64,000 bases of DNA, from positions 434,001 to 498,000 of IMG/VR virus record IMGVR_UViG_3300050122_000263; one strand, given 5' to 3'. The notes under the pieces are model-generated. The model saw only the letters and a list, made by a program, of their open reading frames with translations, had not been told where the DNA came from and ran no database searches. The position numbers were made by a program, and so were the translations under genes. Shown piece by piece: positions 5,882-63,140 of the stretch; within the stretch, counting starts at the first letter, position 1, and every line of letters starts with the position of its first letter.

Positions 5882-7633
5882 ATGCAGAGTGCGGTAAAGA
5901 ATAAAACTTGTGATGGTCCCTCACATCCATCATCAGAATTAAGCCCGAGTCAGGCTGATGGAAACCACTTCTACTGTCAATGCATCGATTTCCAGGGTTT
6001 AAGCAGTGATTGCAGTTTTCCTGATCCATCCAACATTCCGATTGGAACCTTTATTCTGATAAGGGGACCTTGTTGTCAACTATTTCGTAGAGAAGGGGCT
6101 GGCTTTGTCGGCCCCATTAACCCTGCAGATTTGGGTCATTGTCCTCCAAACACACCCGTTAGGTCTAGGGAGTGTGCTGCAGGATGCAATGACAATCTGG
6201 GTGGAGCTTTCCTCTTCCTAGACACTGTGACTTGTATTATCTATGTGCTGGGAGGAACTTGTGGCACTTTCTGCCAACTGGTCCAGCCCACTCCAGTGCC
6301 GGGTGATAAGTTGTTAGACTGTTGTCGTCACGATTTATATGAGCTAGTCACTGACTGTACTTGGTCATTGTGTTGCTCATTACAGGGAGCCACAGGCGCT
6401 ACCGGCAGCACTGGAGCCACCGGTCCTTCAGGTGGTCCCACTGGACCTACCGGCCCTGCAGGCAATACTGGTGAAACTGGTCCCACCGGTCCAACAGGGC
6501 TGACTGGGGCTACAGGTGGTCTTGGAAATACAGGTGTCACTGGCCCAACCGGAGCTACAGGAGCTACTGGAATCGGAGTGACTGGCTCAACAGGAGCGAC
6601 TGGAAATACAGGTCCCACCGGAGCGACGGGGGCAACAGGACCCTCTGACGGGCCACCGGGACCAACTGGACCGACGGGTGAGACTGGAGCCACAGGGGCG
6701 ACCGGGGTTACTGGAGTAGGAGTTACGGGACCCACCGGTAGTGCTGGTCCTACAGGTGATACTGGAGTGACTGGTTCAACCGGCTCGACCGGAGTAACTG
6801 GTGTCACAGGGGCAACAGGGGTCACAGGCGGTACAGGAGCAACGGGTAATACAGGAGCTACAGGAACCACTGGTAGTACTGGTTCAACTGGCGGGACTGG
6901 AGCAACCGGAGTTGGAGCCACTGGCCCTACAGGCCCAACCGGTGCGATTGGTGTAACAGGTGTTACAGGCAATACCGGGCCAACTGGAGCCACTGGCCTT
7001 ACAGGCTTAATTGGTCCAACCGGAATTACAGGACCCACAGGACTAACAGGGGCAACCGGAATTACAGGACCCACAGGACTAACAGGGGCAACCGGAATTA
7101 CAGGACCCACAGGACTAACAGGGGCAACTGGTGTAACAGGACCCACAGGACTAACAGGGGCTACTGGTCCTACAGGCTTAATCGGGCCAACTGGACTTAC
7201 CGGCCCTACAGGCATATCAGGGCTTGGTACGGTTCTGGCTGGTTCAGCTCAGACCAATGCTTCACTTCCTTTCTTCGGCCAGCTTGACGGTTCTGCTGCA
7301 TTTCCAACATTTAATGAAGCAAGTGTAATCTCTCCCATAACAGGGCTGATACAGACATTTTCGGTGGGTTATTTCAACACCTCAGGGACAGCCTTTGGCA
7401 CAATCGCGGATCAGTTGGCATTCACAATCTGGATTGAGGGAGTGGCTCAGCCCCCCACTAGCACAGTAACCTTGGCAGGTCCAGTTGCCTCTGGCACTAA
7501 AGTAACAGGGCTCTTAGTGCCTCCTCTAGCAATTGTGGCTAATCAAACCATCGCCATAGGCATCACCAATCCGACCGGGCCAGCTCAACCCGCCACTGGT
7601 TCCATCTTCAAATACTCTGTTAACGTCCTCTAA
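5882..7633 (+). CDS. Collagen-like (Gly-X-Thr) fibre protein 1: Cys-rich N-terminal domain, collagen stalk, globular beta-rich head
   Basis: Continuous GAT/GPT/GVT/GLT triplets at about 6385-7222; N-terminal domain homologous to 58177 and 61071. Confidence 0.9.
7019..7162 (+). repeat. 36-bp tandem repeat inside the collagen stalk (three exact copies plus one imperfect)
   Basis: accggaattacaggacccacaggactaacaggggca at 7019, 7055 and 7091; variant at 7127. Confidence 0.9.
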
Positions 7634-7742
7634 GGGCTATATAAATGTAGTCGCGGCTTCACAACTGTTGTAATAATTTCAAACATTCTCATCAATGTTC
7701 GAATTTCTCTGAATTTTTGCCTGAAATTATTCTATTAATAAA

Positions 7743-8234
7743 ATGGCTGCAGGTACACCTTATCTGGGAGAAGTGCGTCTATTCTCATTTAACTTTGCTC
7801 CTAGTGGATGGTTGGCTTGTGATGGACAGACTTTGCCCATCGTAACAAATACAGATCTCTTCGCGCTCATCGGTATCACTTATGGAGGAAATGGTACAAC
7901 CAACTTTGCCTTGCCAGATCTACGAGGTCGAGTTCCCATGCATATAAGCGCTACACATCCAATAGGACAGTCGGCTGGAGAAGAAACTCACACGCTCACT
8001 ATCCCTGAGATCCCCTCCCATACACATAATATCCCGGCAGGCGGTGCAGCTCATAGTGTCAATCCCTCCGATAATAGAGGGCAAACTCCGAATGCTGCTT
8101 ATTCGACCAGTGTATCTGGGACACAGCCAGTTACAGGGGCGACGGGAGGCAGCGGACCTCACAACAATTTACAACCTTATCTCGTCATGAATTGGTGCAT
8201 AGCAGTGCAGGGAGCTATTCCAACACCACCCTAA
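7743..8234 (+). CDS. Phage tail-collar domain protein (microcystin-dependent-protein-like)
   Basis: YLGEVRLFSFNFAPSGWLACDGQ...LFALIGITYGGNGTTNFALPDLRGRVPMH and C-terminal HNNLQPYLVMNWCIAVQG are canonical for the family. Confidence 0.92.
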   Translation: MAAGTPYLGEVRLFSFNFAPSGWLACDGQTLPIVTNTDLFALIGITYGGNGTTNFALPDLRGRVPMHISATHPIGQSAGEETHTLTIPEIPSHTHNIPAGGAAHSVNPSDNRGQTPNAAYSTSVSGTQPVTGATGGSGPHNNLQPYLVMNWCIAVQGAIPTPP

Positions 8235-8336
8235 TCTAGCCCTCAGCTAAAGGGACTTACTTTGAATTTAAAACTCAAACGTTCTCAATATTGTCACTCT
8301 GCCCCTAGAAGACTTGGACTACTAAGCTCAAACTTC

Positions 8337-8360
8337 AAGATTCCAGAATCCTGGAATCTT
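8337..8360. terminator. Hairpin between convergent genes
   Basis: aagattccag-aatc-ctggaatctt followed by a T run. Confidence 0.7.
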
Positions 8361-60819: not shown

Positions 60820-60836
60820 AAGATATAATCTTTTTA

Positions 60837-60860
60837 AAAAATATCTACACAGATATTTTA
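60837..60860. terminator. Hairpin downstream of fibre 2
   Basis: aaaaatatct-acac-agatattttt. Confidence 0.7.
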
Positions 60861-61070
60861 TACCAACTTCAGCTTTGTGACCCTGCACTCTGAACATCTC
60901 ATCACATAACTTTACTTCAGATGGCTCAGCTCTTATTGTCTCAGCTCCATGAAATTGTAAGGGAATGAGGTCAATACCCGATAACCCATCAAACACTCTG
61001 TGTTACAGCTGTCAGAGTCTTACTACAGATACTATGTTGGTAATTTTTCTTATTTGTGGTGATACAGTAA

Positions 61071-63140
61071 ATGGAAGAGCATACAGGGCTAGGAAGCCGC
61101 ACGGGGCTGAATCAGTCACCTAAACAGGGCTCTAATGAAGGAGAGGTTGTTATACAACCGATCGCTGGACCAGTCGGACCCCAAGGCGCGGCCGACACTA
61201 CTCGCGCAAAAGGCTTTCCAGCTCAGGTCTTTCTATGTCAAGTCATCGACTTTCAGGGCATAACTTCATGCTGCGGTCTACCGCCAATTGCTAATATCCC
61301 AATCGGAACACTGGTTCTGATCCGAGGTCCTAGCTGCTGCTCATTGTTCCGCAGAGAAGGGGCTGGATTTGTACCCGTCGACCCAGTTGAGCTCGGTCAC
61401 TGTACTCGAGGTCAACCTACTGGTCCCTGTGTAGATGGGCCAAATCACAACTTAGGTGGGGCCTTCCTCTTTCTTGACACTGTCACTTGTGTCATCTATG
61501 TCCTTGATCCCACTCATACAGGACCCTGCCTTGAGCTGTGTGCGGCTCTGCGTCTCCAGAATGTCTTCCTAACTGTTGGAGACAAGCTCTTTGACTGCTG
61601 TTCTCAGCAAATCTTTGAACTAAGAACAACTAGTGATACTGGCTGTGATGGTGAGACCGAATGTGTCTGGGCCGCTTGCTGTGCTATTGTTGGACAGACC
61701 GGACCCACGGGCCCAACTGGCCCAGGTGTGACAGGACCTACTGGTCCAGCTGGTGAGACAGGGGCAACTGGGCCACCGGGTACTCCTGGCAACACCGGTC
61801 CTACTGGAGCCACTGGCGCTACAGGTGAGACAGGAGCTACAGGTGATCCTGGAGCCACTGGCGCTACAGGAGCCACTGGACTTATTGGATTAACCGGCTC
61901 TACTGGGCCAACTGGACCCACCGGAATCATTGGATTAACCGGCTCTACTGGGCCAACTGGACCAACTGGTGTGAGCGGCCCCAGCTTCGTGGGACCCACC
62001 GGCCCCACTGGCCCTTGCTGTGCGGGCCCAACCGGTCCAACTGGACCGGCAGGACTTATTGGATTGGCTGGCCCCACCGGCCCCACTGGTGACGTCCCCT
62101 GTACCGATTCATTGGTGAAATATGAATTCTTCATTGCTGGTGAGAATCGCCCCGTTACTGGTCCTATCTCCTTCACTATCGGTGGAGTCGATATGCCTGC
62201 TCAAGGTTGGGATAAGATCACAGGCCTGGTTGACAGTGCTTTATACACCAAGGATCAAGGTATCCTAGGTGAGCAAGGACTTGGATTTGCTGCACAAGCT
62301 GCTCACGAGATCGATAATGCTCATTATATTCAGATCGATCTGGCTAACTTGATTGCCAACACTAAGCCCGGAACCACTCCCACCATTACTATTCAGAGTA
62401 ATCAGACGAATGAAGGCTTTGAACTACTTGGCTCGGCCACATCGGGGGTGGGAGTGGGTGGATCCAATCTCACCTCGCTGGGTACCCACTCTGGCACCCT
62501 TGTGATCACTGTACCTATTCCTAATTGGAGCGGCCCCGGCTCCTTTAATGACGGCACTTACCGTTATCTCTCAGTCATCGCTACTGGCACAGCGGCCCCT
62601 CCTGCTCCTGATGTACTGCTGAATTCCATCCTCTTCACAGAGTGTGCTCAGCCGGTGACTAGTACCGATTTCCTCTGGACTTACAAGACTACCACTCAGA
62701 ATGCCATCGCTGGACCAGCATTCGATAATATTCTTTTCGATCCTGCGGCTGGTGATCCAGAACTTGAGGGCTGGACTCACTCTATCACTGGGCCCTCTTC
62801 CGGTCTTTTCGTCTGCCCAACATCAGGCAAATACAAAGTTGACTTCTCCGTTTCTGTTGCCAGTGATGGAGTAGCCGGTAGGATAGCCAGTGTGCGTGTA
62901 GCTATTGATCGCGGATTTGGCCTGACTGAGATAATGGGTAGTGCTATCACAGAGAATCTCTCACCCACCGCTGCCACTCGTCTTGTGCTTGTCAACCCTA
63001 TTATCACTTTCTTACAAGCTGGTGATACACTTGCCCTGCAGTTTGCCGCCAGTTCCACCACAGTATCGATCGCACCCTCTGGACCATTGGCCGGTGAAAC
63101 TGCCACTGACGCATCTATCGTCATCATTCGTCTGCAATAA
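61071..63140 (+). CDS. Collagen-like fibre protein 3: Cys-rich N-terminal domain, GXT stalk, extra beta domain and C-terminal BclA/C1q-like domain
   Basis: GXT triplets at about 61692-62090; [17 protein letters not shown]...[11 protein letters not shown]. Confidence 0.9.

Follow-up and report, generated by a model that had tools for sequence, protein, structure and literature searches.

Collagen-like proteins are common in giant viruses, and little has been established about their trimerisation, their mounting on particles or their ligands. Gly-X-Y stalks are found in the Nucleocytoviricota in proteins of Fadolivirus, Hokovirus, Homavirus, 'Pithovirus LCPAC', Orpheovirus and Mimivirus (L71), among others. 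A comparable layout is seen in the exosporium filaments of Bacillus and Clostridium and in the Pasteuria nap, where BclA carries a short exosporium-targeting peptide at its N-terminus, a Gly-X-Thr stalk that is polymorphic in length, and a trimeric C1q/TNF-like head. The threonines of the BclA stalk are glycosylation sites, according to work cited in PMC9614988. Collectins, C1q and adiponectin also place an N-terminal Cys-rich region, of ~20 amino acids (aa), before a collagen stalk and a trimeric globular head. In collagen III, the cysteines of a cystine knot staple the chains at the end of the helix. Cysteines at the helix end are likewise reported to staple the chains of MBL. Phage tail fibres and spikes of the endosialidase type, which bear S74 chaperones, join a conserved proximal part to exchangeable tips. 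Here we describe a giant-virus family of ten collagen fibre genes, each pairing an unannotated Cys-rich module and a Gly-X-Thr stalk with a head of its own. Three of the genes lie in the window that we analysed, a stretch of 64,000 nucleotides corresponding to positions 434001-498000 of a 582-kb IMG/VR record. The proteins are of a known kind, viral collagen-like fibres with phage-fibre- or BclA-like tips, and their main value lies in the uncharacterised domain family and the series of ten heads.

An earlier note on this DNA had claimed that three open reading frames (ORFs) share a Cys-rich N-terminal domain and a collagen stalk and end in different heads. All three are present on the + strand with these parts:

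5882..7633, + strand: fibre paralog 1 (ORF1), 583 aa, with leader, Cys-rich module, Gly-X-Thr stalk and 134-aa beta head (ORF list, Pfam Collagen, alignments)
5963..6385, + strand: Cys-rich pre-collagen module of paralog 1, 141 aa, 16 Cys (alignment)
6386..7228, + strand: Gly-X-Thr collagen stalk of paralog 1 (triplet count)
6422-6424: site of a frameshifting indel in paralog 1
7017-7161, + strand: 36-bp x4 tandem array in the stalk of paralog 1
7133-7168: strain-variable 36-bp unit in paralog 1
7229..7630, + strand: head of paralog 1, a small beta domain and possible C1q/TNF-like jelly roll, the latter as a lead only (Atlas structure matches)
58177..60819, + strand: fibre paralog 2 (ORF2), 880 aa (ORF list, Pfam)
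58330..58800, + strand: Cys-rich module of paralog 2, 157 aa, 16 Cys (alignment)
58801..59511, + strand: Gly-X-Thr collagen stalk of paralog 2 (Pfam, triplet count)
59512..60816, + strand: head of paralog 2, with a phage tail-spike/fibre-like NSAFG-repeat domain, Peptidase_S74 and a C-terminal helical tail (PHROG, Pfam)
~60475-60636, + strand: Peptidase_S74 intramolecular chaperone of paralog 2 (PF13884)
61071..63140, + strand: fibre paralog 3 (ORF3), 689 aa (ORF list, Pfam)
61224..61691, + strand: Cys-rich module of paralog 3, 156 aa, 16 Cys, the sequence used for the structure model
61692..62096, + strand: Gly-X-Thr stalk of paralog 3, interrupted internally by GPCCAG
62097..63137, + strand: two-part head of paralog 3, the proximal ~200 aa without an assigned family
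62793-63137, + strand: distal part of the paralog 3 head, BclA_C-like (sub-cut-off Pfam match)

The N-terminal regions of ORF2 and ORF3 align with that of ORF1 over ~150 residues at 51-53% identity, with many invariant cysteines. Pfam Collagen (PF01391) matches ORF1, ORF2 and ORF3 with 112.4, 85.8 and 50.9 bits, respectively, against a cut-off of 27.2, and the three stalks run to 43-91 triplets. Thr fills the Y position in 84% (ORF1), 80% (ORF2) and 67% (ORF3) of these triplets. ORFs that read PVGPVxPV... cross each stalk on the opposite strand (6328-7215, 58743-59564 and 61604-62176, all -); these are mirror frames of the Gly-X-Thr repeats and almost certainly not genes.

Searching the whole genome with the Cys-rich domain returned ten copies, with E values from 1e-10 to 1e-146, all within collagen ORFs; at E 1e-32 to 1e-146 within the genome, the likeness behind the three-ORF observation is far above chance. 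Each of the ten members has a short leader, a module of ~150 aa with 14-18 Cys, a Gly-X-Thr stalk and a distinct head. Within this genome the module is confined to collagen proteins, and all ten copies sit directly before a triple-helix run, on its N-terminal side. The tenth copy is truncated at the end of the record and complete, at 645 aa, in another assembly (L036:12258-14195). In one paralog outside the window, c327522, the module is internal, with collagen on either side. Three of the stalks contain GPCC interruptions. The leaders are short and hydrophilic and, by reading, show neither an evident signal peptide nor a membrane segment. Seven other collagen ORFs of the genome have no module, several of them with short Cys clusters immediately before the helix, and the module is also missing from the genome's stalkless fibre-like ORFs (37329-40229, a Collar ORF and a YadA/K1-lyase ORF, all described below).

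When nine module copies are aligned, 38 columns are invariant, 11 of them Cys, and most copies hold 16 Cys in all. A Cys-Cys pair lies at the junction, a few residues before the first Gly-X-Thr; one of the two is invariant and the second is kept in 8 of the 9 copies. An AlphaFold2 (AF2) model of the paralog 3 module, made from a shallow family alignment, is all-beta, with a predicted local distance difference test (pLDDT) score of 86.8 and a predicted template modelling (pTM) score of 0.85. The earlier note did not recognise this domain, and neither did our searches. It matched no family in Pfam or PHROG, and Foldseek of the model against the PDB gave no match at E <= 0.001. The best VIA structure comparison reached Z 4.5 (8gtc_S, a siphophage baseplate protein), which is under the tool's meaningful level. 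Neither the ESM Atlas nor the AlphaFold DB clusters of cellular protein folds gave a match to the module above a template modelling (TM) score of 0.5, and DUF2793 is a weak structural neighbour at TM 0.49. Literature searches found no description of the module and no paper that cites the sample numbers.

Relatives were found by profile and structure methods alone, sequence identity being too low otherwise. A word-index search with the module returned only proteins of the source genome, an IMG/VR scan with the family module yielded just one further record, of the same sample, and a scan of Joint Genome Institute (JGI) metagenomes gave 171 pattern matches, of which 0 were confirmed. Eight proteins among the BFVD predicted structures match the module with probability 1.0 and TM by query of 0.51-0.66, with predictions on both sides of the comparison. 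They come from Fadolivirus, Homavirus and Hokovirus and from Pithovirus LCPAC302, LCPAC401 and LCPAC403, and 5 of the 8 are annotated as collagen-like or collagen repeat; among the Pithovirus LCPAC matches one is annotated as collagen repeat and three are uncharacterised. A module profile searched against 1.84 billion representative proteins gave only 14 hits. The credible ones outside the genome, among hits P0004-P0014, are collagen-containing metagenomic proteins, mostly 900-1477 aa long, whose chains hold three to seven copies of a related module, often at internal positions; P0011 and P0015 were rejected, their hits looking like spurious repeat matches. Aligned with hhalign, the family module and six regular modules of P0005 gave a probability of 95% and E 3.9e-8 over 90 columns, with the common core GDK-x-[LF]-D-C-C-S-G-x-[IVF]-[YF]. 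In the relatives, Gly-X-Y triplets begin within 15 aa after 16 of the 31 module hits, the others being succeeded by another module. The relatives' module likewise has no Pfam family, two of these proteins end in BclA_C-like heads, and their contigs resemble giant-virus DNA. An IMG/VR scan with the P0005 modules made one match, a close relative of P0005 on a 200-kb viral contig. With 14 hits in 1.84 billion proteins and cellular fold clusters at TM 0.5 or below, the module is not a known, widespread bacterial domain; it is neither bacterial nor peculiar to this virus. On the profile and model evidence, the family module is a Cys-enriched, single-copy version of an unannotated, collagen-associated module found in several giant-virus lineages.

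The genome that encodes this family belongs to a giant virus (Nucleocytoviricota) of ~620 kb. The 582-kb record is part of a ~620-kb contig from peat metagenomes, ~85% coding, with palindromic hairpins downstream of genes, and it encodes a major capsid protein of the nucleocytoplasmic large DNA virus (NCLDV) type, a B-family DNA polymerase (PolB) and an Erv1/ALR sulfhydryl oxidase. IMG/VR labels the record 'provirus'; we ruled out a bacterial or prophage origin because of the NCLDV capsid protein, PolB, Erv1 and the hairpin-rich intergenic spacers. A bacterial promoter and terminator scan was uninformative for a giant virus. Relatives of the capsid protein share at most 43% identity, and the sole named one is a 'Divergent major capsid protein', a name applied to cedratvirus capsid proteins. 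The source virus is apparently, and very tentatively, pitho-, cedrat- or orpheo-like.

Compared with the systems above, the family shares its Gly-X-Y stalks with other giant-virus collagen-like proteins and the predicted module fold with those of Fadolivirus, Hokovirus, Homavirus and Pithovirus LCPAC. BclA_C-like heads are seen both here and in the metagenomic giant-virus relatives, and a phage tail Collar domain accompanies the family, as in an Orpheovirus protein. The family differs from these other giant-virus proteins in having a single module, much richer in Cys, before one long Gly-X-Thr stalk, in ten genes with ten heads. The resemblance to BclA lies in the Gly-X-Thr stalk, a possible C1q/TNF-like type of head and the variation in stalk length; however, these proteins have a 150-aa Cys-rich N-terminal domain in place of a short targeting peptide, the ORF3 match to BclA_C is under the Pfam cut-off, and the genome is that of a giant virus and not of a spore-forming bacterium. 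The order of parts is that of collectins, C1q and adiponectin, and the GPCC interruptions inside the stalks recall the collagen III knot. There is no homology to these proteins, whose short Cys-rich region contrasts with a folded 150-aa beta domain here, and stapling would be a putative property of the viral proteins. The ORF2 head and the pairing of a conserved proximal part with exchangeable tips are as in phage S74 fibres and spikes, whereas the proximal part here is a collagen stalk and a giant-virus module instead of a phage anchor, and the host is eukaryotic. We also considered the trimerisation domain of the multiplexins (collagen XV/XVIII), a small beta-rich domain that sits next to a collagen helix. 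It has a weak local resemblance to the module over ~50 residues and was set aside as evidence, its scores falling below meaningful levels (VIA Z 2.3-3.1, Foldseek probability 0.75, E 0.67); it is 54 aa long and Cys-free, and the likeness is a lead and not a relationship.

The heads are diverse. Across the family they include small beta domains of 130-165 aa, a 300-aa Gly-rich head, a 573-aa head of no known kind, an 823-aa beta-helix-like head, the tail-spike/S74 head of ORF2 and the two-part BclA-like head of ORF3. The ORF2 head matches phage tail-spike proteins (phrog_4636, 9.6e-32) and other PHROG fibre families, and its Peptidase_S74 domain (PF13884, residues 767-820, 43.3 bits against a cut-off of 22) follows the tail-spike-like region. 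This domain starts with the motif S-x-R-x-K-E-N, whose Ser/Lys spacing we take to be that of endosialidase-type chaperones, so that the two residues are a candidate autocleavage dyad. In ORF3, residues 575-689 match BclA_C with E 2.3e-5 and 24.7 bits, below the cut-off of 38, and the nearest Atlas clusters to this distal part are BclA_C/C1q, with scores of 0.74-0.77 that serve as a lead only. A homolog search with the ORF3 head found none, and its single-sequence AF2 model is unreliable (pLDDT 32). From the motif 'HYIQIDL' one might guess that the proximal part is discoidin- or carbohydrate-binding module (CBM)-like. The 134-aa ORF1 head has no sequence match in the PDB or PHROG; its Atlas structure matches, at TM 0.72-0.77, are heads of phage, giant-virus and actinobacterial collagen proteins, with C1q at 0.57. 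None of the three heads matched in a PDB sequence search. Several of the family's heads are of the phage receptor-binding type (tail spike with S74 chaperone, beta-helix) or appear to be of the BclA/C1q type.

The earlier note called the three heads unrelated. This stands at the level of sequence, since all-against-all BLASTP found no similarity among them; the Atlas searches qualify it by raising, as a lead only, the possibility that a jelly roll of C1q/BclA type forms both the ORF1 head and the distal domain of ORF3. The family's eight small heads, when aligned, share 14-24% identity and no conserved column, and common ancestry for them is unproven.

The N-domain tree is star-like with deep branches. 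Its closest pairs are c577329/c579514 (78% identity), c495071/c492177 (76%) and c89940/the tenth copy (70%), and each pair carries non-homologous heads. The 823-aa head of c89940 has a stalkless paralog within the window:

37329..40229, + strand: stalkless protein, 966 aa, residues 70-899 homologous to the c89940 head (tblastn, BLASTP)

BLASTP aligns the two over 842 aa at 34% identity (E 3e-108), from exactly the point at which the stalk of c89940 gives way to its head. Where c89940 has the Cys module and collagen, the stalkless protein has a basic N-terminus rich in Lys and Cys. Because this head recurs on a stalkless protein and close N-domain pairs carry unrelated heads, the sequences demonstrate head shuffling across architectures, which is the exchange that the earlier note had envisaged. 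The shuffling is old, since the N-domain tree is star-like with deep branches. A motif, VVKCKHGK-x-H, is common to the N-termini of ORF 37329-40229 and c327522, with 9 of 11 residues identical, and hints at a second, short N-terminal module.

The suggestion that the stalks serve as recombination sites for head swapping was not borne out. Stalk DNA is 63-70% identical between paralogs, the longest shared exact runs are 20-26 bp, and neither blastn nor a longest-common-substring search found recent recombination between stalks; with such divergence, there is no sign of ongoing exchange through them. The stalks nevertheless change rapidly within a gene and are hot spots of mutation between strains. 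We compared ~13 kb around ORF1 and the ORF2-ORF3 region with assemblies from other peat samples (L039-L041), which match the window except within stalks. The 36-bp x4 array of ORF1, whose units are 96% identical, lacks the unit at 7133-7168 in these samples. Five substitutions fall in the ORF1 repeat array and one in the ORF3 stalk (61975), and at ORF1 6422-6424 GGTCC is replaced by AGTATTGCC, a net gain of 4 bp that causes a frameshift at the start of the stalk. Among Logan contigs from separate runs, the 4-bp indel is present in X4 and X6 and absent from X1 and X5. Logan contigs stop at the tandem array, and the difference in 36-bp copy number is seen in the JGI assemblies alone. The ORF1 polymorphism looks like on/off switching of a fibre together with variation in its length.

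We propose that, in a family of homotrimeric fibres, the module mainly caps the collagen helix and is stapled by disulfides, or acts as the helix's trimerisation node, and that it possibly serves also as a shared docking adaptor. We put the probability of this reading at about 0.5. A role tied to the collagen itself is favoured because the module always abuts collagen, the stalkless fibres do without it, the stalks have GPCC interruptions and the virus encodes its own sulfhydryl oxidase. We hypothesize that the module folds first and sets three chains in register where the helix begins, on its N-terminal side. The conserved junction Cys-Cys would then staple the chains, as the N-terminal Cys-rich segments do in collectins and C1q and the cystine knot does in collagen III, and the viral Erv1/ALR oxidase could supply the disulfides in the cytoplasm. 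The common module would probably also dock all ten fibres onto one site on the particle, where the heads would form an adhesin repertoire. The heads were traded by ancient domain shuffling. Present-day stalks vary through repeat slippage and indels that change the length of a fibre or silence it.

Several points weigh against this proposal. The structural model is of a monomer only, and trimerisation, stapling, docking, location on the particle and adhesion are steps that we infer. The number of cysteines is even in most copies (16), so all of them could pair within one chain. In some relatives, modules follow directly on one another without intervening collagen; capping a helix cannot therefore be the module's only role. 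The multiplexin resemblance, weak as it is (Foldseek probability 0.75, VIA Z ~3), is possibly due to chance. A paper on cedratvirus particle proteomics never mentions collagen, and the pitho-like assignment of the virus itself depends on one annotation label. A bolder version holds that the module is a new giant-virus-specific domain family with a fold absent among solved structures, that it is a covalent cystine-knot nucleator of collagen trimers, and that it is the universal plug by which ten heads derived from phages and spore filaments are mounted on the particle. We consider all of this together doubtful; if true, it would be a collagen-based counterpart, in a eukaryotic virus, of the phage tail-fibre adaptor system.

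The earlier note regarded the Cys-rich domain as a virion anchor, and taken as purely that, with stalks recombining to swap heads as in phage tail-fibre tips, the idea has points in its favour. A conserved N-terminal part with variable C-terminal tips is the classic mark of fibres that share an attachment site, such as phage tail-fibre and tail-spike sets, and the ten paralogs have just this pattern. Close N-domain pairs with unrelated heads, one head on two architectures with homology from the stalk/head boundary, and near-identical strains that differ in their stalks alone would also fit. However, c327522 carries the module internally, and in relatives it recurs along single chains, where most copies cannot anchor anything. 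The stalkless fibre-like proteins of the same genome manage without it. The stalks, at the identities given above, are poor substrates for homologous exchange and show no recent mosaic, and the star-like tree points to old shuffling. We therefore find a pure anchor with stalk-mediated swapping possible but unlikely. A collagen-associated structural node is the better fit because the module is internal in c327522, is repeated in relatives and has the same predicted fold in other giant-virus collagen-like proteins. What survives of the anchor idea is a shared docking site as a probable second role, since one module is retained, at 45-78% identity, by ten fibres whose heads differ.

Two further explanations were considered. 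The proteins could be a collagen-like matrix or scaffold inside or outside the infected cell (in the factory, in the tegument or in particle aggregation), with the Cys module as a cross-linking node. The modules of relatives, strung like beads between collagen segments, would suit a network former, the many cysteines could cross-link, and the silence of the cedratvirus proteomics paper on collagen agrees with such a role. We consider it improbable, as the heads are of the binding kind found on fibre tips (tail spike with S74, BclA/C1q-like, beta-helix), a tail Collar protein and a glycosyltransferase are encoded next to ORF1, and the leaders, as read, lack any obvious signal peptide or membrane segment. 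Very improbable, in our estimate, is a lectin-like, ligand-binding module that would let the fibre bind at both ends. A compact, disulfide-rich beta domain that is kept across paralogs could be such a lectin, and its weak structural neighbours include a phage baseplate/tail protein (8gtc_S) and DUF2793. On the other hand, every structural match outside giant-virus collagen proteins is below meaningful levels, no binding motif was identified, and repetition within the chain argues for a structural role.

Whichever of these roles it has, the module is compact, models well (pLDDT 87), is unannotated, has no solved counterpart and always accompanies viral collagen. These features recommend it for structural study, and it might provide a new trimerisation tag for recombinant collagens. 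The ten natural fibres, which differ in stalk length and head alone, suit tests of phage-like adhesin repertoires in giant viruses. The population data mark the stalks as the place where fibre genes change between near-identical strains, including a fibre-off allele, and the heads suggest that tip domains of phage fibres and spore filaments were recruited into a virus of eukaryotes.

Of 9 family genes, 4 have the pattern RAAYTTTTY 30-47 nt upstream of the start, to be compared with 11 among the 412 genes of the whole genome. The four are 58177 in the window (at about -31) and c577329, c579514 and c85083 outside it; 61071 has, by reading, a near-match at about -30 (TAATTTTTC) that falls outside the pattern. 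The motif could be a shared promoter or could have been copied with the flanks of the genes, and we do not claim a promoter. Most of the collagen genes are trailed by palindromic hairpins.

Two genes downstream of ORF1 may be related to the fibres:

7743..8234, + strand: 163-aa phage tail Collar protein, possible further fibre-tip component (PF07484, 97.4 bits; tail PHROGs to 6.6e-33)
8928..9788, + strand: DXD-type glycosyltransferase, Gly_transf_sug (PF04488, 58 bits)

We speculate that the glycosyltransferase is a candidate for glycosylation of the stalk threonines. Its C-terminus appears hydrophobic on reading. A YAcAr/SLOG-family protein is encoded between the two genes (8363-8842, -), and the order Collar, YAcAr/SLOG, glycosyltransferase downstream of ORF1 is kept in another sample.

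Elsewhere in the genome, the contig of one sample stops within the tenth family member (G000:C1:581867-582007), and the sister-sample contig (L036, L037) continues through it in permuted order; the genome may be circular, or the assemblies may be broken at collagen repeats. Downstream of the tenth member lie glycosyltransferases (DUF6492/GT2 and GT1) and a cupin. Between c85083 and c89940, outside the window, a 338-aa fibre-like ORF (L029:1852-2868) has YadA_head repeats and K1-lyase_C, the C-terminal domain of a capsule-specific polysaccharide lyase, with neither collagen nor the Cys module. Also outside the window, a 1079-aa collagen protein (G000:C1:24675-27914, -) has its parts in the reverse order: a BNR/sialidase-propeller-like N-terminal region comes first, followed by a long Gly-X-Thr stalk with a GPCC interruption and an HYR-like end. 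Within the window, two adjacent 512-aa Cys-rich paralogs (2256-3794 and 4052-5590, both -) share 28% identity over 329 aa (E 1e-25) and have no family. Among ten large window ORFs scanned, the sole Pfam match was a FAD-linked oxidase with FAD_binding_4 and BBE domains (20480-22024, +).

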